Assembly (NCBI RefSeq): GCF_902713615.1
Contig: NC_052154.1
Coordinates: 80,827,072-80,891,071 of the forward strand
Reading direction: 5' to 3'
DNA length: 64,000 nucleotides
Source of the DNA: Scyliorhinus canicula
Taxonomy: Eukaryota
Position 1 is the stretch's first letter. Every line of letters begins with the position of its first letter. The notes beneath the pieces were generated by a model. It searched no databases, was not told the origin of the DNA, and saw only the letters and a list, made by a program, of their open reading frames with translations. The translations under genes were made by a program, and so were the position numbers. Below are positions 1,058 through 54,119 of this stretch, one piece after another.

Positions 1058-1118
1058 ATGTTGTCGCGTGTGACCCCTGTGTTCATATTCCTGTTTCTCC
1101 CGAGGATCATTTCAACAG
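1058..1118 (+). CDS. Gene 1 exon 1, signal peptide MLSRVTPVFIFLFLPRIIST(G)
   Basis: ATG at 1058, hydrophobic core, phase-1 donor CAG|GTATCT at 1119. Confidence 0.8.
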
Positions 1119-11841: not shown

Positions 11842-14800
11842 GACTTCAGGTGGTGGACATGGTGCGAGGTGTCACATACAGGGCAGCTCCTGTTTGAAGG
11901 CACAGGAAATAGCCCTTTTTACCCGATACTGGGTGAAATTTTGATGAAAAGGTGTAGCTAGAGGTTGGAGGGGTAGTTTCCCCAGGAGTGGTATGTCCGC
12001 TGGTTCCCAAACCCGACAGAAGCCACTGAGAAACCTGACCAAAGTGTTAGAGGAAACCTGTGCTGCAGTGGCTCGTGTAAGGCTGGCTGCTGGGGAAGGG
12101 CTGCTGCAAGGCTGAAGACCCAGTTGGAGCAGTTGATGGTTTTTAGTGAGGAGAAATTCTGCCAACAGAGGAAGGACATGCGGGAGGAACGCCCGAAGGC
12201 CATCGAAGGAGCTGCAGCATCCCTGAAGAGTTCATTAGAATGGCTGGAGATGTGCAGGGCTGGCAGATTCCGGAGATCGAAGGAGTGATCTCGGGCCACA
12301 GTGATCGTGTGTGCGTCTGGAGGCGGAGCTGGGGCTCCTGGGGGAACCTGTGTAAAATTTCTAGGGCAAAGATGGAGGGGCAGGAGGGGTCAAATACCTC
12401 GAGAGGGCGGAACCTGCAAATAGTGGGCCTGCCTGAAAGAGTGGAAGGTGTAAGTGTCACGAGGTACGTCTCGAACATGCTGGAGGGGCTGGTGACAGAA
12501 GAGGTGCTAGACAGGTCCCTGAGGCAGAAGCCTAGAGCTGGGGAGCCGCCATGGGCAGTGATCGTAAGACTCCACAAATTTGTGGAGAAAGAGGAGATTT
12601 TGCTTTGGGCCAGGGAGAAGCGTACCTACGACTGGGAGGTGAATAAGGACCAGATTTATCAGCACATCAGAGCTGAGTTCGCAAATCAGTGGGCAGGGTT
12701 CAACAAGGCCAAAGCGGTGCTGTAGTGGTGGCAGATCAGGTTCGGGGTGTTCTATCTGGCAAAATTATGGATGACGTTCGGAGGTCGGGAGTATTATTTT
12801 GAGAACCAGAAACAGCTGAAGACTTCATTGAGGAGCATAAACTGGGGAGAACTGAGTGGACAATGGGGTGCTGGCACTTCGTAATGGTTGGGAACATGTT
12901 CAAAGTGGGGATAGGGATTGGGGGATTTTTGGATTTGTTGTTTACTGTTGGGATTGTAAGGGATAAAATGTTTATGTAGCGATGGATGTTCCCATCCCCT
13001 CTCCTGTGTTATGGGACTACTGGTGTTCAGCATTTGATTGTTTGCTTTTGGGGGAGGCCTGGGATTCGGGTGAAGCCTTTGCTTGGGTAAGGGAGGGTAC
13101 AGTCAGCAGGGAGACTTCTTCCTTGAGCTGAAGAGTGGGGGGGGGGGGTGTTTGGACAGGGGCTGTCATGCTAGTAGGTGATGCTGGTGAACGGAAGTGA
13201 GGTGGTGTGGGAGAAGGCTGAGAGGGGTGGCGAGGGGGTGGGGGGCGGTGGGTGGAGGGGGAATTGGGGGAGGGCGAGGTTATTGCAACATGACAGGGCA
13301 TGAGAGATGACATGGCCAGGGCGGAGAAGGGGGACATCTGGGATGGGCTAGGTACAGGGTGGAATTAAGTGGGCGGGAGTGAAGTGAGGAAGATTGTAGA
13401 GGTGATTGGAGGTGGAACCCTCCAGTAAGGCTGGTAATGTGGAATGTGCGCTGGTTAAAGTCGCAGGTGTCCGCCCACCTCAGGAGCTTGAAAGAGGGGG
13501 TGGTCTTCTGCAGGAGACGCACCTCCTTGTGAAGGACCAGGTTAGGTTAAGGAAGGGGTAAGTCGGGGAGGTTTTTTACTCGGGGTTTGATTAGAAATTG
13601 AGGGGAGTGGCGATTTTAATGAGCAAAAAAATGGGATTTGTGAGTGCAAAGGAGGTTAGGGATCCAGGTGGGAGATATGTGACTGTGACTGGGGTATTGG
13701 AAGGGCAGCTGGTGGTGTTGGTTAAATATATGACCCAAATTCGGATGATGTGTGTTTTGTGACGGGGTTGCTGGCAGAGATTCTGGATTTAGCCACGCAC
13801 CAGTTGATCATGGAAGGGGATTTTACTTGTGTCTTAGAGCCAAGGGTGGATAGGTCGAGCTCCATGGCGATGGGTAGGGTATGAATGGCAAGGAAGCTGG
13901 GGGGGGGGGAGGGATCATGGAAAGGATGGGTATGGTGGATCCATGGCGTTTTCAGAACTCAGGGAGCTCAGGGGGAAGGGTGTATTCCTTTTTTTCACAC
14001 GTCTATAATGTGTATTCGAGGATTGATTACTTTGTAGTGGGTTGGGAGATTTTGCTTGGGGTGGAGGGCGCAGAATATGTGGGGATAGTTATCTCGGACC
14101 ATGCTCCCCAATGGCTGGAGATTCAGTTTAGATCGGGATGACGCCGGGGCAGAGATTTGATTCATGGTTGTTAATGGTTTTCGTGATAAGGTGCGGGGGC
14201 AATTAAGAAGTATGTAGAGTTGAATCAGAATGCGGAGGTGTGGGCCTCCATATTGTGGGGCGCCCTGGAGCCAGGGGTTAATGGGGAAATTAGTTTGTTT
14301 AAGGGTCATGCAGATAGGGAAAGGAGGGAGGAAAATAACCGTCTAGTGAGCGAGATAGTGGAGGTGGACAGGCAGTATTCGAGGGTGCGGAGGGATTTGC
14401 GAGGAGGAAAACGTTGCAGGGACAGTTTGACAGGCTGACAATGGGTAAGGAAGTAGAGCAACTGCATAGGGCAAGAGGGGTGCAATGGGGAGATGGCTGG
14501 TGCAGCAGCTGTGGAGGCAGACTGCATCCAGAGAAACATTGCAGATACAGACTTGGGCTGGAGATGTGGTGTCAGAGTCGAGGAATATAAACAAGGCGTT
14601 TAGGGAATAGTACAAGGGGCTGTACGAGGCGGACACAGGGGAGTGGAGGGAGACATGGGGCAGTTTCTGGATCAGCCGGACTTTCCCCAGGTAGAGGAAG
14701 CAAAGAGGCTTTGGAGGGGTCTTTGGGTCTGAGGGAGGTGCTGGATACTATCAGGGGTATGAAGTCAGGGGAAGCCCCAGGGCCAGATGGGTGCCCGACG

Positions 14801-17460
14801 GAATTTTATAAGGATTTTGTGATGGACCTGGCACCATATCTGTTGGGGGCACTTAATGAAAAGCTGGAGAAGGGGAAGCTGCCTGTGACCATGACGCAGG
14901 CAATAATCAGACTAATCCCGAAAAAGAGGAAGGACCCGGTGGAATGTGATTCGTATAGGCCCATATCATTATTGAATATGGATGTGACAGTATTGGCTAA
15001 GTTTTTGCTGGGGAGAATGGAGGATTGTGTCCTGGTGGTGGTTGCAGAAGATCAAACAGGCCTTCTGAAGGGCAGGTAGTTCGTGGGTAATAAAAGACGG
15101 CTGTTGAATGTCTTGATGAATCCGTCAGTGGGTCTGGTACAGGAAGCGGTAGAGTCCATAGATGCGGTGAAGACATTTGATCAGGTGGAGTGGCGGTACA
15201 TGTTCTGGGTTTTTGTAAAGTTTGGGTTTGGACCGAGATTTGTGGCATGGGTGCGGTTGCTGTGTGTGGCAGCATAGTGTGAGGACGAATAATATGAGTT
15301 TGTGGAGTTTTGACTTACACAGGGGTACGAGGCAGGGGTGCCCACTGTCACTGTTATTGTTTGTGCTGGCCATAGAGCCATTGGCAATGGCTCTCAGGGG
15401 GTCGGTGGAGTGGCCGGGGATTATGAGGGAAAGAGGGAGCATTGGGTGTTGATCTTTGCCAATACCCTGTAGCTGTATTTTTCATATCCGCTGGAGAGTA
15501 TGGGAAGAATTATGGGCCTGCTGGGGAGATTTGGAGGGTTCTCGGGGTATAAACGGAATGTAGGGAAAAGTGAGGTTTTCTTGGTGAATGAACTGGGATG
15601 GCTGGCAAATTTAGGGAGGATACCATTTACGGTAGTGAGGGATAGGTTTAGGTACTTGGGGATTCAGGTAGCGAGGGAATGGACGGGACTCCATAAGTGG
15701 AACTTAACGAAGCTGGTGGAGGATGCCAGGGAGGATCTTAAGAGGTGGGATACACATTGGCGGGGAGGGTCCAAGTGGTGAAAATTAATATTCTGCCGAG
15801 GTTCTTGTTCATTTTTCAGGCTCTCCCGATCTTTATACCAAAGGCCTTTTTTCGGAAATTGGACACAATCATTTGTATGGGTGGGGAAGCTGCCGAGGGT
15901 CGGAAGGACCCTGCTACAGAGGCAGAGACAGCAGGGCGGGGTGGCATTGCCGAACCTGCTTCATTATTGTTATGCGGCAAATGTGGATAAGGTTCAGCGA
16001 TGGTGGGAAGCAGAAGGGGTAGTATTGACTAGATGCACGAAGAATCATGGAAGTGGTCTCATTTGAGGAATATCGTGACGGCAGCATTGTCAATGGCTCC
16101 GAGTAGGTATTCCCGGAGCCTGATGATGTAGTCCACGGTGAAGATATGGAATCAGTTGAGGAGGCATTTAGGGTGGAAGAGATGTCAGTATTAATGCTGC
16201 TGTGTGAGAATCATGGGTTTGAGCAGGGAGGGGCTATGGATAGTGTATACAGGAGGTGGAGGGAAGTAGGGCAGGCCAAGTTGAGGGATCTGTATTTGGA
16301 GGAATGGTTCACCAGTCTGGAGGAGCTAAGGGTGAGGGTAGAGCAGCCAAGGGTGATTGAGTTCAGCAATCTGCAGGTTAGGGCCTTTGCGCAAAAGGTT
16401 TGGGGAGGTTCCCTAGGTTGCAGGAATACAACTTGGTGGAGTGACTGCTGCTTCCGGATGTGGAAGGGGAGGGAAGAATTGGGGATATATACAATTGGCT
16501 GGGGGGGGGGGTGTAGGGAGGTGAACGGGTGGTGAAGGTCAAGGCGAAATGGGAAGGGGACTTGGGAGGGGAGATAAATTGGGGGAGTATTGAGTGAGGC
16601 AGTACGTAGTGTAAATGGGATCTGCTCCTGTGCAACGATGAGCCTGATACAGTTTAATGTGGTGCACAGGGTGCATATGACTCGGGCAAGAATGAGTGGG
16701 TTCTTTCAGGGAGTAGCAGATGATTGTGAGAGGTGTGGGCGGGACCAGTGAATCATGTGGGCATATTTTGGGGTTGTGAAAGATTGGGAAGATTCTATGC
16801 GGGAGTGTTCACTGCCTTGGCCACGGTAGTGGAGGAGGAGGTGGACCCAGACCCTTTGGTGGTGATATTTGGGGTTTTAGAGAAGCAAGAGATCAAAGCA
16901 GGCAGCTCGCGAGTAATATAAGACGGCTGTTGAATGTCATGAAGAATCCGTGAGGGACTCTGGTACGGGCGGTGGTGGATGAAGTGAGGACTTTAATCGG
17001 GTGGTAGCGGCTTGGTTGGGTGACCAGTACGACTAGCTGCGGTTGGAGATGATAAACATAGAACATACAGTGCAGAAGTTGGCTATTCGGCCCATCGAGT
17101 CTGCACCGACCCATTTAAGCCCTCCCTTCCACCCTATCTCTGTAACCCAATAACTCCTCCTAACCTTTTTGGTCACTAAGGGCATTTTGTCATGGCCAAT
17201 CCACCTAACCTGCACATCCTTGGACTGTGGGAGGAAACTGGAGGAAACCCATGCAGACATGGGGAGAACGTGCAGACTCCGCACAGACAGTGACCCAGCG
17301 GGAATGGAACCAGTGACCCTGGCGCTGTGAAGCCACAGTGAAGAAGGGAAAAGCGTTGTACAGACTGCAGTGTTGATTAATGGAAGTATGTTTCCCAGGG
17401 TGTTTATGTGCTGTAACCTGTTTTTATACATGTTTGTAATAAAATACATTAAAAAAACAA
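11842..17460 (+). mobile_element. Full-length but decayed L1-clade LINE (ORF1, APE endonuclease, RT)
   Basis: ORF1 motif NLQIVGLPERVEG..VIVRLHKF; APE SRIDYF..SDHAP; [25 protein letters not shown]; A-rich 3' end; homologous to the L1 at 48135-53870; many stops and frameshifts. Confidence 0.92.
17056..17340 (-). mobile_element. HE1/V-type SINE inserted in the L1 3' region
   Basis: Reverse complement of the SINE consensus with a (TTCTATG) tail. Confidence 0.8.
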
Positions 17461-17880
17461 ACACGCCATGCTGCCGCACACAGACGCAAGCTCTGTGCAT
17501 ACTCATTGAAAACGTATCTAAACGTATTAATGTGCATGCATTATCAAAAAGGTCAATAGATCAATAAGAAATGAAACCGTCTTGGGAGACTCAGAGGAAC
17601 AAATTCATTACTTTGCTGCCTTTATCTGAATCCACCAAACACTTTGTGCTTTATCATCAAACCCTATCCCTATGTTCATGATTCAGTGCACATGTCACTT
17701 TATGCATTTTCGAGCATAGTTACAACCTTGTGAGAAAGCAAGTGGGCTCACAGTTACGTCCAATATGCGAATTCTGCACATAAGAAGCAGGTCATAGCTC
17801 CATATGAATATAATGTATCTAACTGACAGCATCATCCAGGATGATAGCTGTGGCCTAAATTGGTGTGCCATTCTTGCAGA

Positions 17881-18106
17881 TTAAAAAAAAACATTAGAGT
17901 ACCCAATTCATCTTTCCAATTAAGGGGGAATTTAGTGTGGCCAATCCACCTACCCTGCACTTCTTCCAGGTTGTGGGGGGTGAAACCCACGCAGACACGG
18001 GGAGAAAGTGCAAACTCCACATGGACAGTGACCCAGGGCCGGGATTCGAACGCGGGTCCTTAGCGCCGTAGGCAGCGATGCTAACCACTGTGCCACCATG
18101 CTGCCC
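17881..18106 (-). mobile_element. HE1/V-type SINE
   Basis: Reverse complement of GGGCAGCATGGTGGCACAGTGGTTAGC..GGGTACTCTAATG. Confidence 0.85.
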
Positions 18107-27071: not shown

Positions 27072-27126
27072 ATGGCAATTAGGGTTGTGCTTCAGAAAGC
27101 ACAGCTCGTAGGGATTATCTTCATTG
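27072..27126 (+). CDS. Gene 2 leader exon MAIRVVLQKAQLVGIIFI(V)
   Basis: 55 nt, phase 1, donor TTG|GTATTT; a homologous 55-nt exon is present in gene 3 (59281-59335). Confidence 0.75.
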
Positions 27127-30100
27127 GTATTTTCCATAGTCTACTCCTCGTCTTTATGTTTGTCGCTTGCTCTCCATCAGTCTGATTTTTTATATAACTA
27201 AAACGATTGTTCATTTTCTTTTATAGTTGTTGCCGATTCTCTGCTTAACGTGACCCAGATCCCGGAGACAATCCATTCGATCGTCGGTACAGATATTGCA
27301 TTCGAATGTGCGTTTGTTACTTTTCAAGGCCACTCAAATGTGAACATACATTGGTGGAAACTTGGCGAAAATGAATTGATGCAGCCAGGATCAGACAGCA
27401 GGAAGCGATTTGTCACTGGAAACGAAAGAGCCTCCTTCAGACTCCTGAATATCACTGTCCAGGATTCTGGAGTCTATTACTGTGGAGTGACACTTCAGGG
27501 GAACAAGGCTGTAACTGGAAGTGGATCAAAGCTCGTCGTCAGTGGTAAGAGAAGCGTAAAGCGGTAGGCTGTACAGTCTGTTATTCATGATGTGGAGATG
27601 CCGGCGTTGGACTGGGGTGAGCACAGTAAGAAGTCTTACAACACCAGGTTAAAGTCCAACAGGTTTGTTTCAAACACGAGCTTTCGGAGCACGGCTCCTT
27701 CTTCAGGTGAATGGAGAATGGAGAATTCTTCAGGTCACCTGAAGAAGGAGCCGTGCTCCGAAAGCTCGTGTTTGAAACAAACCTGTTGGACTTTAACGTA
27801 GTCTGTTATTCAACTGAGTAATCAAGATTGGCATCCCTTTCACGCTCCCTTGGGCGTTCCTTTAATGCTTACATTAGAAATAAATTGTTCCAGCAGAAAG
27901 ATGTTAGGTATCAAATAGGGATGCTCTTTTCACCATCTTAGTTACTCCAGTAATTATTAATTGTGTTCTTTCATGCATTGAGACCCACAGAGGAAACGTT
28001 TTCATGGCATTCAAGTGCGGATGTAGATTGTGAAATAACTTGAGGTAGTTTCTATATAAGTAATGTTTTGAACAGTTTAAACTCGTGCTGATCATCAAAG
28101 ACAAAGAAAATATCTGGAAATAAAAATTTTATTGAGTGTAATTTCAATCAGAACACGAATCTCTCTCTTCCTGTGGTAAAAGGAATGCTCATCATACAGG
28201 GAATAAAGCGTTTTAGAAGCAATTCAGTATTTTGCAAACGTTCTACTATATGAATCTGGCAGCAGGTTTGCACACACCATTCTACAAACAGACATGAGAC
28301 GCTACTAAGTAATTTTATAAAAAAATTAGACTACCCAAAAATAGTCGATATATTAACATTCTTCTTGGACCTTCCACCAGCCCTCCCAACTCCAGTGAAG
28401 ATTGTTCCCCATGTATCTGAAAGCAATGTACCTGGTTCTTTGACTCTCCTGTGTGAAATGGCTTCATTTCACCCGGCGGGTCTGACTATCACTTGGTACA
28501 AAAACAATGAAAGCATTGTGACTGGAATAAACACCACGAAGCAACTCAGCAGAGCCGGAATGTATGACGCTTGGAGCTATTTTGAAGATGCACAACCGAT
28601 CCGGGAAGGAACTGTTTATAGCTGCCTGGTTACTCACGTGACTCTTCAAATTCCAGCCATGGCAAGTTACATGGTTCCCACTTGTAACCCAGGTAGGATA
28701 TCATTTTCATAGAGAAAAAAGTGACAATGCAAAATAATTATCTACCGTTATTATCCCGAACGTGTTGTAAATCCCACCACAATAACAGACAATGAAAATA
28801 AGGCGCAAAATGTGCTCCGATCTTCCAAAATAGGATCAATATTGAAAACACTGCAATTTCTTATTTATTTCCACTTCACTTACGTTTCCATTTTCAGACC
28901 TTCCACCTCCTCTGGAATAGTGCCATCCTTTAAAATGGACAGAACTTCCAGATTTGGTCTGGGGTGAAACTGGCGGTTACAGTTGTGCCGCCTTTCTCCA
29001 TACTGCCAGATTTACTTCCCACTTGTCATCGGACCAAAACTGACAGTTCGCCAAGTGCAATTGTATCGCGTAACCGTAAATATTGCGACCCAACTATTTT
29101 TTTACAGAAGTAATTTCTCGCCACTGTTCTATTTCATTCGGGAAATCTTCCGACTTCATTCAAACTGCGGTCAGAATTTGTCAATTTCCTATTTCAAATC
29201 AAGTGGTCGCTGACATAGCGGCTCCTTATTGTAACGACATGTAGATTTATTTAGTCCGGAGAAGGTCTGAAACGTGTGTTGAAGTTCTTCAGTCTGAACT
29301 GGCAAATGGAAGTGACACCCTGACGGCTCAATGGCAAATGTATATGAGTATTCCCTGTGCTCACGCGATTTCTAATGGAATGAACTAAAATTCTGCCGTT
29401 TATCAAATACTTGTTACATATCGATAATTTTCTTGAAATAATGCCAGACACATACTTTGGAATTAATAATAGTGTTGGGGCCACGGAATGAATTGTGCGC
29501 TCATAATTTGCGGCGACAAACCAACGGTAAACCTTCGCACGGGGGAGTCACGATATACCTCCACGTAATGGGCAAAGGGATTTAATACTTGAATTAGTTA
29601 ATTTGAAAGAAAAATAGTATTTATTTCCATTGCAACGATAGCGACCTCTGGTGTCCCGAGTCTCAAAATAGAATACCGAGATTAAGTATCGGTGAGCCTG
29701 GAAATCAAAAAAGCGCAACATGGGTGATAGCGAGTGTTTTGTTTACACTTTCCCAGATTACCTTCAGGATTTCCACAGGTTGATAGATGCGGTGTGTCAC
29801 TTCCCCATCCCGAACACCCTTGGCTTAGTTTTTAGAAACTTGCATGAATTTTCATCAAAAACAGTTGATTGGGCAGCGCGCTGGCGCAGTGGTTAGCATT
29901 GCTACCTCACGGCACTGAGATTCCAGGTTCGATCCCGGCTTTGGGCCACCGTCCGTGTGGAGTTTGCACATTCTCCCCGTGTTAAGTTGCCCCTTAATGG
30001 GAAAAAGTTAATTGGGTACTCTAAATTTTTATTAAAAAAACACGTTGACTCCCCATGCAAAACTGATCGTGCAATTCTTCGATATTAAAATATGTTTGTG

Positions 30101-33100
30101 GATGTGACTACAGATGACACCCTCCAGAATTCACAGCTCCATATCTGAAAGTTATATCAATCTTCCAGATCGTGACAGCACCTCGTTCTCATCTTATTTA
30201 CGGATCTTTGGATGCGCAGGGTTCGCACTGATGTTTTTGCTGCTGGTGACTTACTGTATAATGTTATTCATACGGAGCAGCTATGAAGGTAAGATATCAC
30301 GCTCTAATGTAATTAAAATATAAACCAACATTAACAAACAGCCGCTAGTCAGCAGCAAGAGAAGACCACGATGAACTCAGTTTTCTGTTGGCGCTGGTAC
30401 AATATGAAACTAACCTTGCTGGGAACATAAAAACATGACTAAACGTTTCGATAGGTATGGAAAGAGAAAACAGATTGTTTAAAACTAATGTAGGCCCCTT
30501 ACAGTCAGAAACGGGGGGATTCTTATCGGAGAACAAAGAAATGGTTGACGAATTAAATTCGTGCTTTGCTTCTGTCTACACAAAGGAAGGCATGAATTAT
30601 GTACTGGAGTTTTGAGTAACACAATTTCAGTGAGGAGCTGAAGGAAATTTGTATTAGCAGAGAAATGGTTTAGTGGAAATTCATGGGATTGAAGGCGGAT
30701 AAATCTCCAGGACTTGATAATCCTCATCCCAAAGTAGTTAAGAAAGTGGCCGGAGAAAAAGTACATCCATTGGTGATCATTTTCAAAAATTCCTTGCACT
30801 CTGGAGTGGTTTCTACAGATTGGAAGGTAGCTAATAAACCCAGCTATTCAAAAAGGGAAGTAGAGAGAAAACAGGGAACTATAGACCAGTGAACCTACGG
30901 TCGGTAATAAGAAAGAGTCAATTATCAAGGATTTAATCGCACAGTATTTGTAACGCAGTAGTATAATCGGACAAAGTCAGCCTGGATTTATGAAAGGGAA
31001 ATCATGCGTGACAAATCTTCTAGAATTCTTTGAAGATGTAACTCATAAAAATGACCAAGGAGAACTGGTCGATATGGTTTACTTAGATTTTTAGAAGGCT
31101 TTCGAATAGATCTCAAAGCAGATTACTATGTAAAGTTAAAGCACATGGGATTGCAGGTAGTATGAGATGGATAGAAAGCTGGCCAGTAGACGACAAGCAA
31201 AACGTTTTCTGATTGACAGGCAGTGACTAGTGGAATCTCGCAGGGATCTGTGCTAGGACCCCAACTGTTCACATTAAATATTAATTATTTGGACGAGGGG
31301 ACTAAATGTATTAACTCCAAACTTGCAGATGATACAAATTTGGGTGGGAAAGGGAGCTGTGAGGAGGATGAAGAGATGTTTCAGCGGGATTTGGACAGGT
31401 TTGGCGAATTGGCATATGCATGGCAGATGTTGTATGTTGGAAGCAAAAATATGAAGTCATATTATTATTTGAATGGGTGTAAATTGAGAGAGGTGATACT
31501 CAGCGAGAGCTTGGTGTCCTCGTGCATCAGTCACTGAAAGTAAACAGGCAGGAGGTAAAGAATACATATGGTGTGTTGGTCTTCATAGCGCGAGGACTTG
31601 AGTATAGGCTAAGGGATGTTTTACTGCAATTGCATAGGGCATTGCTGAGGCCACAGCTGGAGTATTGTGTGCAATTTTGGTGGTCTTATCAGAGGAAGGA
31701 TGGAGGGAGTGAAGCGAAGGTTTACCAGGCTGATTCACAGGATGGCAACACTTTTATATGAGAAGAGACTAGGATTGTATTCATTGGAGTTCAGAAGAGT
31801 GAGAGGAGATTGCATAGAGACTTGTAAAATGTTAACAGGATGAGACAGGATAGATTCGGAAAGAATGGTCCCGATGGTGGGGGAGTTCGGAACTAGTGGT
31901 CATAGTTTGAACATTCGGGGGAAACCTTTTAGGACTAAGGTGAGGGGGGATTTCTTCACCCAGAGAGTTGTAAATCTGTGGAATTCGCTACCACAGATAG
32001 TAGCTCAGGCCAAAACGTTGTGTAGTTTCAAGAAGGAATTCGATATAGCTCTTGGCGCTAACGGAATCAATGAGAATGGGGCGAAGAGGATCAGTAAATT
32101 GAAATTTCTGATCAGCCATGATCATAATGAATAGCGGACCAGGCTAGAAGATCCAATATACCTCCTCCAGATTCTATTTTCTATGTATGTTTCTATGTAT
32201 GTTGTTGGATATTAATGTAGGTCTGAGACTGTTTACACTATTTAGTTTAGATTGGCAAGACCTTAAACATATATTGTGTTTCCAGAACACCACCTTCCAA
32301 CGCACCCTGATCCGAACACCTCCTCTCTGGTATCCAAGAGAGTAAATATGCTAGAAGAATTTTTCCAAAAATTGTTTTCTCCACCATTTAGGCAGAAATT
32401 TCACTTTTTTTTATTGCAATGTAGAATTTTGCCTTTGTATTTTCACATCCCTTGGCGTAAACATGGGTTGTGGAATTTGATGATGCTTTCTTGCCTTCAC
32501 TAGACTCTAAACTGATATTCGATTTACTTGCTGAATCATATTGTGTATTATTGACAATGACGTTTTGAATTCAATGTTTTAGTAAGCAGACAGAGAAAAT
32601 GTGTAGCAAACAATTGTGGCAAATCTGTATGTTAATGATATTCATTCCCCTGATCTCTTGATTTTGTGTTGAGCTGAGAACATTTTAAATCTATGTTGGA
32701 TCAGGGAAACGCTTTTGCATGATTAATATCAATGTAAATTTGTATGTTTATTTGGCTTACCCATATCAAACTGGGACATCAATAAAAAACACTTCCAAAT
32801 CAATATTGGCGCCGAATTCGGTCCACAATCCACCATGCAGGAACTATGTACTCCAAGTCGTCTCAGAATCAGCGGTAGAGTAGCTTTTTTTAAAAAGAGG
32901 ACCAGTATCACAATCTGGGGACGTCCCTAGCATAGGTCTGCACTATGAGATCGCATTGTTTCTGGTTAGAATGGGACGAAATTTGAGCGAGCTCCTTTAT
33001 GCAGAGCTCTAAAAATAGCAGGGAGTAAGCTTTAAAGGCGAAGAGTGGTTTGCCAACTTGGATCCAACTACACTTTTACCATTCGGATTATTTTTTTGCC

Positions 33101-34152
33101 AGACGTATTCGGCCGTCTAGTCTGAGAAGGACAGCACGGTAGCATAGTGGCTAGCACAGTTTATTCACAGCTCCTGGATCCCTGGTTCGATTGCCGGCTT
33201 AGGCCACTGTGCGGAGTCTGCACGTTCTCCCGTGGGTTTCTTCCGGGTGTTCCGGTTTCCTCCCGCAGTCCAAAGATGTGCGGGTTAGGTGGATTGGCCA
33301 TGCTGAATTGCCCTTAGTGTCCAAAGAGATTAAGTGAGGTTACTGGGTTACAAGGATAGGGTGGAAGTGCGGGCTTGGATAGGACTCTTTCCAAGGGCAG
33401 ATGCTGACTCGATGGGCCGAATGGCCTCCTTCAGCACTGTAAATTTTGTGATTCTATGATTCTATGAAGGGGACGTATGACGGCGCAAGCACGACACAGA
33501 CGTTGCCTGCCAGCATTTAGATAGCGAACATTCATCTAAAAGGAAGTACGTAAATAACTCTTGTTTCCTCTCTCTTCTAATTCTCAAGATTGGGATGGGC
33601 TGCGGTCACCACAGCCGCCAGATCCCAACGTTTCTCGGGATTGGTTCCCCCGGGTTTTTCTGACCAATGTGCCGAAGGACCAACCATTTTAGTTGCAATG
33701 ATCTGGACGACAATGATCAAAATTCTAAGTTTCCAGCGCAACGTACATTGCATATAGTGTATTAATGATAATGTTGTCACTATTTCAAATTAAATTGGCA
33801 ACCACTGTCAATTTGGTATAACCTATTTGAAGACACATATTTTGGGGACAGGATATTAGTTCAACGAAATTGCCTGAGTTAATATGATGACTCAGTATGT
33901 AAATACACTAACCTAAAGACGAGTGAAGTATTATGATGACAATACTTCGCTTTATTATGTATTTTGTAGGTAAAGGAAGTTAAGACCTAACTTTGCAAAA
34001 CATCTATTTTACAGACATTGCAAGTCGCATTTGATAACTCGCTCGCTTATGCAGAAGTCGAATTAATTCGTTCTAAGAAAAATGGAAATCCTCGAGGCAA
34101 AGAAAAGAGCACAGAATTCGCAGACATAAGGAATGTACGGAAAGAGAGATAG
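27072..34152 (+). CDS. Gene 2: VJ-C1 IgSF receptor paralog; exons 27072-27126, 27227-27544, 28381-28692, 30169-30288, [short cytoplasmic exon unresolved], 34015-34152
   Basis: GT-AG phase-1 introns link leader, V, C1 and TM. The last exon aligns with gene 1 exon 6 but needs a phase 1->0 connector exon; candidates are 30353-30396, 33521-33549 and 33589-33629. Confidence 0.8.
27227..27544 (+). CDS. Gene 2 V exon with J-like G strand
   Basis: AFEC, WWKLG, DSGVYYC, TGSGSKLVV; acceptor TTTTATAG|, donor G|GTAAGA. Confidence 0.95.
27588..27799. mobile_element. Penelope-type fold-back mini-element with two inverted hammerhead motifs, 13-bp TSD
   Basis: TSD AGTCTGTTATTCA at 27575-27587 and 27800-27812; empty site in the gene 3 paralogous intron. 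Confidence 0.88.
27736..27770 (+). ncRNA. Minimal type I hammerhead ribozyme motif (sense to gene 2; identical antisense copy at 27675-27709)
   Basis: CAC-CTGAAGA-A-GGAGCCGTGCTCC-GAAA-GC-TC-GTG. Confidence 0.62.
28381..28692 (+). CDS. Gene 2 C1 exon plus stalk Cys
   Basis: LLCEMASFHPAGLTITWYKN..YSCLVTHVTL..TCNPG; 312 nt, as in gene 1; acceptor CCACCAG|, donor CAG|GTAGGA. Confidence 0.95.
29874..30040 (+). mobile_element. HE1/V-type SINE (internally deleted)
   Basis: GGGCAGCGCGCTGGCGCAGTGGTTAGC..GGTTCGATCCC..GGGTACTCTAAA. Confidence 0.8.
30169..30288 (+). CDS. Gene 2 TM exon (DRDSTSFSSYLRIFGCAGFALMFLLLVTYCIMLFIRSSYE)
   Basis: Acceptor TCTTCCAG|, donor AAG|GTAAGA, 120 nt phase 1-1, 23-aa hydrophobic segment. 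Confidence 0.9.
30400..32200 (+). mobile_element. CR1 LINE RT region and 3' end (decayed), inside a gene 2 intron
   Basis: KSPGLDNPHPKV, TSGISQGSVLGPQLF, LADDTNLGG, LRPQLEYCVQFW, FFTQRVVNLWNSLP; (TTCTATG)-like tail. Confidence 0.9.
33128..33465 (+). mobile_element. HE1/V-type SINE
   Basis: Full consensus with an (ATTCTATG)n tail. Confidence 0.85.
34015..34152 (+). CDS. Gene 2 terminal exon: ITIM LAYAEV and degenerate ITSM TEFADI
   Basis: Acceptor CTATTTTACAG|; TLQVAFDNSLAYAEVELIRSKKNGNPRGKEKSTEFADIRNVRKER*; motif spacing and RKE end resemble gene 1 exon 6. Confidence 0.75.
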   Translation, partial: TLQVAFDNSLAYAEVELIRSKKNGNPRGKEKSTEFADIRNVRKER

Positions 34153-35254
34153 TTGTCGAATGTCCACACAGAGCAAAGAGTCAATTGATGTCCCAATTTG
34201 ATTTGAGTACACCAGAGAAAAATACAAATTTATTCCTTTGTGTTGACCAGGTCTACAGAAGTGGCATTGGATTGCTCTTGTTTTCAGCAACACCAATCCT
34301 TATTATCACCCAGATTAATTCCAAGCCAACGTTACAGCTAAAGCTTTGCAGCTGACTGTAATTTTCCGGTTGAACAGCGAACTGTCAGAAATCCCTGCCA
34401 CTCTGCCGCGAGAGGGACAACTCAATTTCAGAGTCCACACGTGCGCAGAACAAAGCGGAAACCGAGAAGCTGCCGCCAGTGAATTTCTACTTATGTTTAA
34501 TATGGGCCGTAAATGTAACTACGGATTGCAATGTCCTGTCTTGTCATAGTTTGACGGGATTACCCTCTACTCAGGTGTTAGTCTGCGTATAAATCTTTGG
34601 AAAGGTTAATGTTTCGTTAAATGAGGAGACACGTGTTTCTTTCAACAGCATTTTACCCCATCTTTATTGCTGAACATTCTGGTTCATCGTGAAAACCAAG
34701 TCTTATGTTTGTGGAATCTGATATACTTTAAAATATTTTGAAGATTACTGACATTTTAGCTTGTATCTAAAATTTCTAAATCCACTCATAATCATTAATT
34801 TGGATGTCTGAAAATGTAAACGAAAAATGAATGTGCTTTTTCATCCTGGTTTGTTGTGTGTGAATAATTCAATGTGGTCAGTTACTTACTTGCTTGTTTG
34901 CATTTTCGATGATACGGCCGACGGAATTTCGTTGAGCTGACGTTCGATTAAAGCTACCATCGGCAAAGAAGAAAATTATGCAACAGAGATTATTTCTCTT
35001 TTTGGGAACAATTCTTTGAGGACAGAGATCAGGACCATTGATTTGGTGCTGACTGCCAATCTTACCGCGATAATATGAGTCTGTCGGAGCAGAACGGAGG
35101 TCTTTGGAAATGCATGTGATTAATGTGGAAGTGAAATTTATGAGTATTGACTATTGTCTGTAAAAGAGCCACGAACTAAATAAATGAGCGACTATGGGGC
35201 CATCTCAAGCAGCACACACACATCGACAAGATGCTGAAGAGGAGGAGGATTACT

Positions 35255-48134: not shown

Positions 48135-51100
48135 TTTTTTTAACGCATTTTATTCAAACTTGCATCAAAGAAGGTTACAGCAAATAAACACCCCGGGAAA
48201 CATTCTTCCCAACAATCAACTATACAGTTTGTACCGATTTTTCTCCTTTTTCACCGCCCCTCCCCATCAACCACCCCCCACCACCTGCTATGAACAGCTC
48301 CACAAATACGGCCACAAACATCCCCCACCTTTTCTCAAACTCCCTGCTGAGCCCCTTAACTGATACATTATCTTCTCTAACCGCAGGAATTCATAGAGGG
48401 CACCCAACCATGCTGCTACCCCCGGTGGCGATGCCGACCGCCACTCCAGCAAAATTCGTCGCCATGCAATCAGAGAGGCGAAGGACAAGACATCGGCCTT
48501 CCTCCTCTCCATGAGCTTCGGCTGCACTGAAACCCCAAATATTGCCACCAAAGTGTCCGGGTCCACTCCCTCCTCCATTATCCTGGGTAAGACCGCAAAC
48601 ATTCCTGCCCAGAATCTTCCCAATTTTTCATAACCCCAAAACATGTGTGCATGATTCGCTGGCCCCGCCCACAGCTCTCACACTCATCTGCGACCCCCTG
48701 AAAAAACCCACTCATTCTCACCCGAGTCATATGCGCCCTGTGCACCACTTTAAACTTTATCAGGCTCATCCTTGCACAGGAGGAAGTCCCGTTTACCCTA
48801 GTCAGTAGTACCTCATTCCATGCTCCCCAATTGATCTCCATTCCCAACTCCGCTTCCATTTCTCCTTGATCCTCCCACCTGCTCGCCTCCCTGCACCCCC
48901 AGCCACTTATATATGTCCCTAATTTTTCCCTCCCCGTCCACATGCGGAAGCAGCAGTCGCTCCAGCAGGGTATATCCTGGCAATCTAGGGAACCCCTTCC
49001 AGACCTTTCATGCAAAGTCCCTAACCTGTAGATACCTGAACTCACTACCCCATGGCAGTTCTACCCTCTCCCTTAGCTCCTCCAGACTGGTGAACACTTC
49101 CCCCAAATGCAAATCCCTCACCTTGACCAGCCCCACTTCCCTCCACCTCCTGCATACACAATCCATCCCGCCCCCAGCTCAAACCCATGATTCTTGCACA
49201 GTGGCCTTAGCACCGACTTCCGTTCCACCCTAAATTGCCTCCTCAGCTGATTCCATATCTTCACCGTGGACTGCACCACTGGGCCCAATGAATACCTACT
49301 CGGAGCCATTGGCAATGCTGCCGTCACCATAGCCCTCAAACTAGACCCCTGACAAGATTCCTCCTCCATCTACACCCACTCTACCCCTTCTCCTTCCCAC
49401 CACCGCCGCACCTTGTCCACATTCGTCACCCAATAATAATGAAGCAAGTTTGGCAACGCCAAACCCCTTGCTGCCCCTGACTCTGTAGCAGGGTCCTCCC
49501 CACCCTCGGCACCTTCCCCGCCCATACAAAGCCAGAGATGATTGTGTCCACTTTCAGAAAAAAGGCCTTTGGTATAAAGATCGGGGGAGCCTGAAAGATA
49601 AACAAGAACTTCGGCAAAATATTAATTTCCACCACTTGGACCCTCCCTGCCAACGTTAAATGCAGTGTATCCCAAATCTTGAGATCTTCCCTGGCGTCCT
49701 CCACCAGCGTTATTAAGTTCCAATTATGGAGCCCCGTCCATTCCCTCGCTACCTGAATCCCCAAGTACCTAAAGCTATCCCTTGCTACCGTAAATGGCAC
49801 CCCCCCTCTAAATTAGCCCGCTGTGCCAGCTCATTCACAGGGAATACCTTGCTTTTCCCGACATTCAGCTTGAATCCCGAGAACCCTCCAAACCTCCCCA
49901 ATGGGCCCATAATCCTTCCCATACTCTCCGACGGACCTGAAACATACAGCAAGAGGTCATCGGCATAGAGCGACATCCGATGTTCCCGCTGTCCCCTCAT
50001 TATCCCCTGCCACTCTGCCGACCCCCTGAGACCCATCGCCATTGGCTCTATGTCCAGCACTAACAGCAGCGGTAACAGCAGGTACGCCTGCCTCGTACTC
50101 CTGTGTAAGTCAGAGCTTCGTGATCTCATATCATTCGTCCTCACCCTCGCTCTTGGTGCCACATACAGCAACCGCACCCATGCCACAAATCTCGGCCCAA
50201 ACCCAAACCTTCCCAAAACTTCAAACAAGTACCGTCACTCCACCTGATCAAATGCTTTCTCCACGTCCATGGACACCACCACCTCCGGTACCAGAGCCCT
50301 CGATGGATTCATCACCACATTCAACAGCCATCTTATATTACTCATGAGCTGCCTGCCCTTCACGAAGCCTGTTTGATCTTCTGGAACCACCCTCGGGACA
50401 CAATCATCCCCGCCAACAACTTAGCCAATACTTTCACATCTGTGTTCCATAGCGATATGGATCTATAATACCCACATTCCACCAGATCCTTCCTTTTTTT
50501 TGGGATGAGTGTGATTACTGCCTGCTTCATCGTCTCCGGCAACTCCCCCTTCTCCAGTGCTTCATTAAACGCCCCCAACGGATGTAGTGCCAGGTCCACC
50601 GCAAATTCCTTATAAAATTCTGCCGGATACCCATCCGGCCCAGGGGCCTTCCCTGCCTTCATACCCCGTATACTATCCAGCACCTTCCTCAGCTCCATGG
50701 GCTCCTCCAATGCCTGCCTCTTTGCTTCCTCCACTTGGGGAAATTCCAGCTCGTCCATAAACCACCACATGTCCCCTCCTCTCCTCCTGGGTCGGCCTCA
50801 TAAAGTCCCTGGTAATACTCTCTCAATGCTTCATTTATCTTCCCTGGCTCTGACACCACATCCCCAGCACCAGTCCGGATCTTCAATATTTCCCTGGACG
50901 CAGCCTGCCTCCGCAGCTGGTGCGCAAGCATGCAGCTCACCTTCTCCCCATACTCTTATTGCACCCCTCTTGCTCTATGCAGTTGCCCTACCGCCCTCCC
51001 CATTGTCAGCCTGTCAAATTGCCCCTGCAATTTTTTCCTCCTCCATGGTGGGCACCCTCGAATATTCCCTCTCCACCTCCACTATCTCGCTCGCTAGGCA

Positions 51101-53870
51101 GTCATGTTCCGCCCTCCTTCCCTTATTCGCATGAAGCGTAAATGAGATAATTTCTCCCTGGACCACTGCCTTCAATGCTACCCACAAAATGCCCACCGAC
51201 ACCTCCCCATTCTGATTGAACTCCACATAATCCCGAATCGCCAACTGCACCTCCAGCCCGGCCTCTGCTCTTGTCCCGTACTGAACCGAATATCCAGCCA
51301 GTGGGGTGCAAGGTCCGAGATAACGATCCCCACATACTTTGCTGCTCCGCCCCAACCAAAATCTCCCAACTGACTACAAAGTAATCAATCCTCGAATAAA
51401 CCTTATAGACGTGTGAAAAGAAGGAATACTCCCTTCCCCCTGTGTTCTGAAAGTGCCATGCATCCATCATACCCATCCACTCCACAAACCACGTCCCCAG
51501 CTCTCTTGACAGCCCTACCCTATCCATCGACCTGGGGCACGATCTATTCACCCTCGGTTCTAGGACACAGTTAAAATCTCCTCTCATGTTGAACTGGTAC
51601 GTGGCCAAATCCGGGATCGCTGCCAGCAACCCCCTCATAAAACCCACATCATCCCAATTTGGGGCATTCACATTTACCAACACTACCTGTGCCCTTCCAA
51701 TACCCCACTCACAATCACATATCTCCCACCTGGATCCCTCACCTCCTTCGCACTCACGAATCCCATTTATTTGCTCATTAAAATCGCCACACCCCTCGAT
51801 TTCAAATCAAACCCCAAGTGAAAAATCTGCCCGACCCATCCCTTCCTTAACCTAACCTGGTCCTTCACACGGAGGTGAGTCTCCTGCAAAAAGACAAGCC
51901 CCGCTTTCAAGCTCCTGAGGTGCGCGAACACCCGTGACCTTTTAACTGGCCCATTCAGTCCCCGGACGTCCCACGTTACCAACCTTACAGGAGGCGTGCA
52001 CCTCCAATCCCCTCTACCATCCATCATCTTCCCCACTTAACTCCTGCCCCTTTAATTCCACTCTGTATCTAGCCCATCCCAGATGGCCCCTTTCTTCGCC
52101 CTTGACCATGTTACCTCTCACCCCTTGCCTCGTTGCAGAAACCTCCCCCAGCTTTTCCCTTCCCCCCACCACTTCACTTTTCCCCCCTCCCCCTGGCCAG
52201 CCCTCTTGGTCTTCTCCCCGCACCACCTCACTTCCATTCACCAGCATAACCTGCTGGCATGGCTACCCCTGCCCAAAGGCACATCCTAATGACCCCCCAC
52301 TGCTCAGCTCAAAGAAGAAGGCCTCCTGCTGGCCTTACCCTCCCCCACCCAAACAAGGACTTCTCCTGAACTCCAGGTAGCCTTCTCCAAAAGCAAACAA
52401 ACAGATGTTAAACACAAACAGTCCCATAAAACTGGAGGGGGGGGGGGTGGGAACATCCATGCTCACATAAACTTTTCACCCCTACAACTCCTTACAATCT
52501 CAACATTGAACAGACCCCCCCCCCCCCACCAAAAAAGGCGAATATCCCCCAATCCCTACATCCCACTTCAAACATGCTCCCGACCGTTACATAGTGCCAG
52601 CATCCCGGTTCCCAAGCATTGCCCACTCAGTTCTTCCCCAGTTTATGCTTCTGAATGACGTCTTCGGCTGCTTATGGGGTCTTGAAATAATACTCCCAGC
52701 ATCCAAACGTCACCCATAATTTCGCCAGGTAGAGCACCCAAAACCTGATCTGCCATCAGTACAGCACTGCCTTGACCTTGTTGAAACCTGCCCGCCGTTT
52801 TGCCAACTCAGCTCCGATGTCCTGATAAATCCAGACGTTATTTCCCTCCCAGTCGCAGCTACGCTTCTCCCTGGCCCACTGTAGAATTTTCTCTTTCTCC
52901 ACAAATTTATGGAGTCTGACGATCATTGCCCACGGCGGCTCCCCAGCTCTAGGCTTTTGCATCACAGAGTTATGCGCTCGGTCCACTTCAGGTGCCTTAT
53001 CTAGCATCCGTTCTGCCACCAGTCCCGCCAGCATCCTTGAGACATACCTTGTGGCACTCACACCTTCAACTCCTTCAGACAGGCCCACTATTCGCAGATT
53101 CTGCCTTCTCGTGGCATTCTCCTGCTCCTCCACCCTTGCCCTCAATGTTGTACAGAGGGCTCCTCGGAGCCCCACCTCTGCCTCCAGGGCCACCACACGA
53201 TCGCTGTGGTCCGTGATCACTCCTTCAATTTCCCGAATCTGTGATCCCTGCACCTTCAAACACCTCTCCATCCGCTCCAAAGTACTCTTCAAGGGCCCCA
53301 TAGCTTCTGCAATGGCGTTTGCATGATCCTCATGCACTTCTTTCCTTGATTATAGTAAGAAGTCTTACAACACCAGGTTAAAGTCCAACAGGTTTGTTTC
53401 AAACACGAGCTTTCGGAGCGCAGCTCCTTCCTCAGGCGTTCCGAAAGCTCGTGTTTGAAACAAACCTGTTGGACTTTAACCTGGTGTTGTAAGACTTCTT
53501 AATGTGCTCACCCCAGTCCAACGCCGGCATCTCCACATCATTCCTTGATTATGGAATTCCTCCTTGATTAAATTCATCAGTTCCTGTATCTGGGGCCTTA
53601 CAGCTTGCCCCTCCCCCGCCTGCATGCTGGAAGAGACTGTCTGTGAACTACAAGACTGTTTCAAATTTCCAGCCAAATCTCTCACTATTCTCTGCCGGGT
53701 CCGGTGATCAGAAGACATACCATTCCAGGGGTAAAGTACTCCTCTAACATTCACCTACGCCTTTTCATCAAAATTCCACCCAGATCTGGGTAAAAAGAGC
53801 CCTTTTCTGTGACTTTGAACAGGAACAGCCCTTTATGTGACCAATCACTCCATGGTCACAAGCGGAAGTC
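48135..53870 (-). mobile_element. Full-length decayed L1-clade LINE with 14-bp TSD
   Basis: TSD ACTGTTTAAATACT at 48121-48134 and 53871-53884; ORF1 (RRQNLRIVGLSEGVEG), APE (VTWDVRGL..FLQETH, GDFN, SRIDY), RT (YADDLLL), poly-A end. Confidence 0.95.
53354..53540. mobile_element. Penelope-type fold-back mini-element inside L1 ORF1, 12-bp TSD, hammerhead motif at 53404-53438 (-)
   Basis: TSD TTCCTTGATTAT at 53342-53353 and 53541-53552; minus strand CGC-CTGAGGA-A-GGAGCTGCGCTCC-GAAA-GC-TC-GTG. Confidence 0.88.
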
Positions 53871-54119
53871 ACTGTTTAAATACTTGTAGCAACACGTTCT
53901 ATTCGTTTTTGCATTTTTAGCTAGCTTCCACTCATACTTTAATTATACTCATAATTTCTCCTGATTAACCATTGGTCATTCTGTGCCTTTTTTTCATATT
54001 CTGAGCAATCATCAGACCTGTCACTCATCTTTGTGCAGTTATATGTTTTCCTTATGTTTAATGCTTTCCCTAACTTATTTGGTTAACTACCTCCCTTTAG
54101 ATCCCTGGTAACGGAAACA

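Follow-up and report, generated by a model that had tools for sequence, protein, structure and literature searches.

Skipping of a frame-setting exon gives a short-tailed V-C1 receptor with a membrane-edge arginine in the small-spotted catshark

Introduction

Does a shark immune receptor with an arginine at the edge of its membrane helix inhibit through a tail of its own, activate through an adaptor, or do both? This question is raised by a stretch of 64,000 nt from the genome of the small-spotted catshark Scyliorhinus canicula (RefSeq assembly GCF_902713615.1, contig NC_052154.1, positions 80,827,072 to 80,891,071 of the forward strand), which we refer to as the window and number from its first letter. 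Its plus strand holds two genes of the same family, gene 1 (six exons) and gene 2 (five exons in the observed mRNA). The earlier note on this DNA proposed that gene 2, with an Arg in its transmembrane (TM) segment (YLRIFGCA) where gene 1 has a Trp (YIWISGCA), is the activating or dual-function partner of an inhibitory gene 1, and that the tail may be switched by splicing. The substitution itself was borne out by translation and alignment. To our knowledge, paired activating and inhibitory receptors, which are well described in mammals and teleosts, are hardly described at all in cartilaginous fish. The locus is a clean test case for two points: whether these animals already use adaptors with an acidic TM residue and an immunoreceptor tyrosine-based activation motif (ITAM) with such receptors, and whether tail choice by splicing is ancient. 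Here we report that gene 2 is a real, expressed catshark immune-receptor gene with a short-tailed product.

Transcripts and product of gene 2

We picked RNA runs by the presence of the gene 2 C1 exon and compared the assembled contigs of four of them (X1, X3, X6 and X8, representing three studies; X1, X6 and X8 represent two, P1 and P5) with positions 28300-34290. Contigs of this kind can show the presence of an isoform, not its absence. Since position 28692 is joined to 30169 across a GT..AG intron in all four runs, the contigs represent spliced transcripts. In X1, X6 and X8 we observed single contigs of 1.2-1.6 kb that span 28380-28688, 30165-30286 and 34013-34290 with contiguous record coordinates. 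These contigs (record 1 of X1, record 14 of X6 and record 20 of X8, the last with record coordinates 302-610, 611-732 and 733-1010) run on from the TM exon into 34013 and beyond and hold no sequence between the TM exon and 34015. The X3 contigs break at 30221 in the TM exon and at 34043 in the tail exon, and are uninformative on this joint. Contig depth was zero in all four runs in the bins holding 32500-32699, 33500-33899 and 33900-34012.

The direct splice to 34015 with the ending DIASRI*, which had been foreseen from the letters, was thus seen in the contigs of X1, X6 and X8 as well as in RefSeq. Translated in this way, gene 2 is identical over 274 of 274 residues to XP_038662971.1 (‘tapasin-related protein-like [Scyliorhinus canicula]’, 274 aa), the single isoform in RefSeq; the gene is already catalogued there under a misleading name. 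The TM exon reads ..SSYLRIFGCAGFALMFLLLVTYCIMLFIRSSYE, and the product ends in ..LFIRSSYEDIASRI (the RefSeq end is also given as ..IRSSYEDIASRI and ..SSYEDIASRI), leaving a cytoplasmic tail of about 11 residues without an immunoreceptor tyrosine-based inhibitory motif (ITIM). Because the TM exon joins 34015 directly, the frame with LAYAEV and TEFADI, which the earlier note had read as one ITIM and an altered immunoreceptor tyrosine-based switch motif (ITSM), is 3' untranslated region (3'UTR) in the transcripts seen: both motifs are present in phase 0, but theirs is not the translated frame of the observed mRNA. Likewise, the suggested acceptor at 33970 would indeed give GKGS*, but it does not occur in the TM-to-tail contigs and falls into a bin of zero depth.

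Two minor observations concern the same transcripts. The skipping junction (30280-30288 joined to 34015-34022) makes SSYE/DI, which fits S-x-Y-x-x-I and resembles a pYEEI-type SH2 site; we treat this as a probable coincidence, as the Tyr, four residues from the membrane, occurs only in S. canicula, S. torazame having SSSK instead. At 34173 in the 3'UTR, X1 and X3 carry a G>A change that is not found in X6 or X8, an ordinary polymorphism between individuals.

A skipped connector exon and the inhibitory tail frame

In the closest relatives a short connector lies between the TM and the ITIM exon, namely KARRQRTDEANSRDKSTSQ in Mustelus, KANRQGNDEASHCGNSTFQ in Chiloscyllium, KVSRQRKDEANNCD in Heterodontus and KVSRQRKGGANNCGKS in S. 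torazame. A tblastn search with the Heterodontus tail located the gene 2 homologue at 32583-32626 (E=0.004). Like the connector of gene 1 it measures 44 nt; it has an AG acceptor, a GT donor and an open frame, and together with the preceding phase-1 base it encodes VSRQRKCVANNCGKS. It aligns with the connectors of S. torazame, Mustelus and Chiloscyllium; with S. torazame it shares 13 of 15 residues. If included, it would bring the last exon into phase and give TLQVAFDNSLAYAEV..TEFADI..*, which matches the orthologues column for column. Gene 2 therefore possesses, between the exons for TM and ITIM, an exon that is not divisible by three in length and that truncates the tail when skipped. The connectors suggested earlier (30353-30396, 33521-33549 and 33589-33629) occur in no TM-to-tail contig. 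For the first of them the corresponding bin, which adjoins a LINE (long interspersed nuclear element) fragment, is empty in X1 and of shallow depth in the other three runs, and an HDEL match at 30367 comprises only four residues.

The donor of the gene 2 connector (TCT/GTATGT) agrees with the consensus at 5 of 9 positions, compared to 8 of 9 for both the gene 1 connector and the gene 2 TM exon. Words from the connector were found in genome-sized DNA runs only and in no RNA-sized run, a weak result given three sampled words. Downstream, in the last exon, the ITIM frame stays open over 45 codons. Its first motif is LAYAEV in S. canicula, VTYAEV in S. torazame and LTYATV in Chiloscyllium, and its second is TEFADI in S. 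canicula versus TVYADI and TEYAEI, respectively. As the two relatives keep the Tyr of the second motif, this residue is ancestral; that S. canicula has lost it agrees with a frame that is not translated. The S. canicula DNA can still encode an ITIM tail, a capacity that the assembled transcripts do not use.

This arrangement resembles that of CEACAM1, in which a 53-nt exon, not divisible by three, decides between the long ITIM tail of CEACAM1-L and the short tail of CEACAM1-S. Gene 2 also places a small exon that is no multiple of three between its TM and ITIM exons, and skipping likewise shifts the frame to yield a tail of few residues and an early stop in the last exon; given this position of the stop, no nonsense-mediated decay is expected. 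Unlike CEACAM1, gene 2 has been seen only as the skipped form, its ectodomain is V-C1 and not a series of V-C2 repeats, and its short form carries a basic residue at the TM edge.

The arginine at the membrane edge

The hydrophobic core of the gene 2 TM segment comprises 23 residues (I241-I263) and is bounded by R240 and R264. We consulted an AlphaFold2 (AF2) model (mean predicted local distance difference test score, pLDDT, 87.2), which predicts a single helix from 233 to 273 with R240 in its second turn. The modelling that the earlier note had called for thus places the Arg inside the predicted helix, but R240 flanks the hydrophobic core instead of lying within it. In the family alignment (A1), 9 of 10 sequences of the gene 2 clade have R or K in this column and Mustelus has Q, whereas over all 40 sequences Leu is the commonest residue. 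In other clades of the family a recurrent TM Arg lies deeper by three residues, where the conserved GCA has its G.

Within the gene 2 clade the residue occurs with various tails. Arg is present in S. canicula (short tail, exon skipped), in S. torazame and Chiloscyllium (both ITIM + ITSM, by gene model) and in Heterodontus (no ITIM); Lys is present in Mobula, Hypanus, Hemitrygon and Pristis, which lack an ITIM in every isoform, the five of Mobula among them; and the Gln of Mustelus goes together with an ITIM. Because it is shared across sharks and rays and is found with ITIM tails too, the Arg is old and not tied to the loss of the tail. The membrane-edge basic residue of the clade thus dates to the common ancestor of sharks and rays.

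N-terminal TM-edge arginines couple LILRA, FcalphaRI and GPVI to FcRgamma. The YLRIF context of gene 2, hydrophobic-hydrophobic-Arg-hydrophobic at the N-terminal end of the TM segment, resembles the outer-leaflet Arg of FcRgamma-coupled receptors such as FcalphaRI, GPVI, LILRA and NKp46. The combination of Arg and one ITIM known from KIR2DL4 has a parallel in the orthologue models of two sharks, which join the Arg to ITIM tails. Unlike gene 2, however, FcalphaRI, GPVI, LILRA, NKp46 and KIR2DL4 are C2-type immunoglobulin (Ig) receptors of the leukocyte receptor complex (LRC) with an unrelated ectodomain; unlike KIR2DL4, the catshark mRNA does not unite Arg and ITIM on the same polypeptide, and any adaptor link of gene 2 is putative.

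The earlier note had also pointed to a CART-like (conserved antigen receptor transmembrane) motif. The string F-x3-FLL-x3-Y is indeed present in the gene 2 TM segment and in the membrane Ig heavy-chain TM segments among our search matches. Within the receptor family, however, it is confined to the two Scyliorhinus orthologues, Tyr and FLL are missing from the TM segments of Mustelus, Heterodontus, Chiloscyllium and the rays, and gene 2 lacks the other conserved Ig TM residues (TAST, YS, TVT, KVK). Shuffles of the gene 2 TM segment reproduce the string in 0.07% (strict form) or 0.75% (relaxed form) of cases, figures that apply to a match chosen after the fact. An assembly of the CART or Ig-alpha-beta type is not supported, as the residue set is not kept across orthologues, and we treat the string as chance in a Phe/Leu-rich helix.

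The Cys of the outer G-C-A motif (gene 2 Cys244, 30213-30215; gene 1, 4252-4254) is kept in most family members. Together with the light-chain-like VJ-C1 ectodomain it suggests disulfide-linked dimers at the membrane edge, as for FcRgamma/CD3zeta or T-cell receptor (TCR) chains. One subfamily in the alignment (P0057, P0167, P0083 and P0089; also P0037/P0081) is short-tailed with an Arg near the outer TM end. This subfamily also carries a conserved acidic-His pair (DH or EH) at the inner TM end (e.g. ..IIVDHV..), a TM signature of its own that may mark a different partner.

Family relationships and gene 1

A full HMMER scan with the C1 exon matched V-C1-TM proteins of sharks, rays and chimaera, several dozen in number and ~200-420 aa long, along with long multi-C1 heavy-chain-like proteins. 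The RefSeq names of the family vary (tapasin-related, SIRP-alpha-like, NCR3LG1-like, lambda light chain-like, CD276-like). For gene 2, Pfam returned V-set, C1-set and generic Ig models only. A tapasin-related identity was discarded, since Pfam finds no tapasin N-terminal domain and the RefSeq name stems from C1-set similarity. By both sequence and fold, the closest solved proteins are antibody light chains, followed by CD276 and SIRPgamma. The typical family member has a neutral TM segment and a long tail with several ITIMs. A minority carries an embedded Arg or Lys, mostly with short or ITIM-less tails, and is scattered on the tree beside ITIM relatives, a distribution that has the usual signature of a paired-receptor family. 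We regard gene 2 as an ordinary ‘activating-type’ member of this family, a large group of elasmobranch surface receptors with a light-chain-like V(J)-C1-TM layout.

Gene 2 falls into a clade of sharks and rays with support of 100/98, and gene 1 belongs to a different major clade. The S. torazame orthologue is 91-93% identical to gene 2 and the ray orthologues are 53-55% identical, while gene 1 and gene 2 share 39% in the V and 41% in the C1 domain. Given this low ectodomain identity and the separate, ancient, well-supported clades, the proposed pairing of the two genes does not hold: on phylogenetic grounds they are neighbours, not a pair. Gene 1 is not the inhibitory counterpart with near-identical ectodomain that is found in paired systems, and word-limited searches turned up no closer ITIM-bearing S. 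canicula paralogue of gene 2. We also looked for DNA-level homology between the introns of the two genes and found none.

Among known systems, SIRP offers several parallels. Gene 2 shares with it a V domain with J-like end followed by a C1-set domain, and the family has all three member types of the SIRP system (SIRPalpha with ITIM, SIRPbeta with TM Lys and DAP12, SIRPgamma with short tail). Moreover, several relatives are named ‘SIRP-alpha-like’ in RefSeq, and SIRPgamma is among the PDB sequence matches. Unlike SIRP, gene 2 has one C1 domain and not the two of the V-C1-C1 layout; the identity is low and light chains match better. The germline-joined VJ-type V domain is shared with the teleost NITRs, which too have ITIM and charged-TM forms but differ in being teleost genes with V plus I-type domains. 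The VJ-C1 layout is that of PRARP and UrIg. Since the liver produces UrIg and UrIg2 as secreted V-C1-C2-C3 molecules (PMC12227049, PMC10751288), an identity with these was rejected.

Interpretation of the short-tailed form

The reading that we favour, with moderate confidence, is that gene 2 encodes an activating-type or adaptor-dependent short-tailed receptor that arose by skipping of the frame-setting exon. Its ancestor would have possessed the 44-nt connector exon followed by a tail exon with ITIM and ITSM. With the connector skipped in S. canicula, the phase-1 TM exon joins the tail exon out of frame and runs into a stop after six codons, so that the resulting 274-aa receptor lacks any ITIM from the old frame and has Arg240 at the outer end of its TM helix. 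It is a reasonable inference from the helix analysis that Arg240 pairs with an adaptor; it would do so through the acidic TM residue of an ITAM adaptor dimer, with the geometry in the outer leaflet that is typical of FcRgamma/CD3zeta. On this reading the replacement of Tyr by Phe in the old ITSM would be neutral decay of an untranslated frame.

Several points weigh against this interpretation. The contigs are compatible with inclusion of the exon in a minor or tissue-specific isoform, X3 is silent on the joint, and the intact connector with its 45-codon ITIM frame also fits continued use. At the very edge of the 23-residue core the Arg could snorkel to the surface without any pairing. The same residue accompanies full ITIM + ITSM tails in the models of Chiloscyllium and S. 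torazame and is hence no marker of tail loss, and the recurrent Arg of other clades sits deeper. In addition, Akula et al. 2014 reported that the shark data of the time contained no FcRgamma homologue (PMC4016189). Our literature search found nothing specific on this receptor family or on shark adaptors, that report alone bearing on FcRgamma.

The first alternative, unlikely in our view though the best of those considered, is that one gene makes two receptors by regulated inclusion and skipping of the 44-nt exon, as for CEACAM1-L/S, and that the sampled tissues show the short form only. One ectodomain would then be joined either to a single-ITIM tail (the second Tyr now being Phe) or to a short tail plus the TM Arg. 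The preserved splice sites and open frame of the connector, its near identity to S. torazame and the open tail frame are what such a gene would keep; shark orthologue models include the exon, and X3 is broken in its TM and tail exons although its depth is high, as a branching assembly graph could produce. However, connector depth is zero in four runs from three studies, the sampled connector words occur in no RNA-sized run, RefSeq has one isoform, the connector donor is weak and the ancestral Tyr of the second motif is gone. The switching of tails by splicing that had been proposed earlier is thus mechanically possible with an intact frame-setting exon, but no ITIM-bearing isoform was seen in the S. 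canicula contigs.

Slightly less probable is a signalling-dead, short-tailed receptor that serves as decoy, for adhesion or as ligand sink in the manner of SIRPgamma, its Arg or Lys being merely interfacial and engaging no adaptor. R240 lies outside the hydrophobic core, a basic residue is retained in ITIM-tailed orthologues, the usual TM Arg of the family is deeper, and older data were reported to contain no shark FcRgamma, all of which would suit such a receptor. On the other side, elsewhere in the family the R240 column mostly holds Leu and is hence part of the hydrophobic helix start; a basic TM residue on the extracellular side opposes the positive-inside rule, yet is conserved from sharks to rays; and basic TM residues accompany tail loss across the family.

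More speculatively, and with considerable doubt, we propose that the gene 2 clade goes back to a paired receptor encoded by a single gene in a shark-ray ancestor, with a light-chain-like VJ-C1 ectodomain, a conserved outer-TM basic residue and an ITIM/ITSM tail that was switched by the 44-nt frame-setting exon. Lineages would later have fixed one state: tail-less in the rays, the horn shark and the small-spotted catshark, and ITIM with Arg->Gln in Mustelus. Under such an ancestry the switch might still operate in unsampled cells of S. canicula.

That the principal S. canicula product unites the TM Arg with one ITIM, as in KIR2DL4, through some other connector is very improbable: the predicted proteins of Chiloscyllium (XP_043563417.1) and S. 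torazame (GCB68530.1) have this architecture, but in every S. canicula contig that bridges TM exon and tail, as in the RefSeq model, 34015 follows the TM exon with nothing in between, and the three connectors proposed earlier are absent from these contigs, two of them lying in zero-coverage bins. Of the activating or dual-function role once suggested for gene 2, the short-tailed, activating-type form stands and the union of Arg and ITIM in one S. canicula protein does not.

Returning to the skipping of the connector, the locus shows, with transcript evidence, a route from an inhibitory to a tail-less receptor in which a 44-nt exon is lost from the mRNA and the DNA stays intact. The gain is incremental, as the gene is already in RefSeq and the receptor class is familiar.

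Organization of the window

The features of both genes are listed in Table 1.

Table 1. Positions of gene 1 and gene 2 features in the window
Feature	Position	Strand	Basis
Gene 2 exon 1: start codon and signal peptide (MAIRVVLQKAQLVGIIFI..), phase-1 donor	27072-27126	+	Translated exon model; product = XP_038662971.1
Gene 2 exon 2: V-set with germline-joined J-like end (..GSGSKLVVS)	27227-27544	+	Pfam V-set; AF2 strands 27-125
Gene 2 exon 3: C1-set domain	28381-28692	+	Pfam C1-set match; contigs of 4/4 runs cover 28380-28688
Gene 2 exon 4: stalk, TM helix, tail start (DRDSTSFSSYLRIFGCAGFALMFLLLVTYCIMLFIRSSYE), phase-1 donor AAG/GTAAGA	30169-30288	+	Transcript contigs
Gene 2 Arg240 codon (cgg), outer edge of hydrophobic segment; Trp in gene 1	30201-30203	+	Translation, alignment
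Gene 2 skipped connector exon, 44 nt, ttttag/TAAGCAG..AAATCT/gtatgt	32583-32626	+	tblastn, orthologue alignment
Gene 2 end of coding sequence in observed mRNA: (g)ac att gca agt cgc att tga = DIASRI*	34015-34034	+	Contigs, RefSeq
Gene 2 ITIM/ITSM frame (TLQVAFDNSLAYAEVELIRSKKNGNPRGKEKSTEFADIRNVRKER*), open in phase 0, untranslated in observed mRNA	34015-34152	+	Translation; homologous orthologue tails
LAYAEV	34042-34059	+	Within gene 2 ITIM/ITSM frame
TEFADI	34111-34128	+	Within gene 2 ITIM/ITSM frame
Gene 2 3'UTR of observed mRNA; contigs extend ~540 nt more	34035-34290	+	Contigs
Gene 1 leader	1058-1118	+	
Gene 1 V(J)	1311-1631	+	
Gene 1 C1	2357-2668	+	
Gene 1 TM exon (..YIWISGCAVGGLAFLTLMIIIGTRFCLKNK), YIWISGCA	4215-4325	+	Comparison sequence
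Gene 1 connector exon, 44 nt, strong donor CTG/GTGAGT	5956-5999	+	
Gene 1 tail exon with VTYAAV + TAYAQV	6596-6727	+	

Several repeats surround these exons. A near-identical direct repeat (1-350 versus 1735-2100) flanks the V exon of gene 1. In gene 2, two tRNA-derived SINE (short interspersed nuclear element) copies are located directly 5' of the TM exon (29868-30030) and in the last intron (33130-33460), with contig depth of up to 10^4-10^5 over both, and a degraded LINE reverse-transcriptase fragment (30400-32200) occupies much of the TM-to-connector intron. Further downstream, G-rich minisatellites are found at 40636-41131 and 44812-44984 (21/42/63-nt and 43-nt units) within a block of 60-65% GC, and two long stretches of the window, 12000-18000 and 48000-54000, show strong GC skew of opposite sign.

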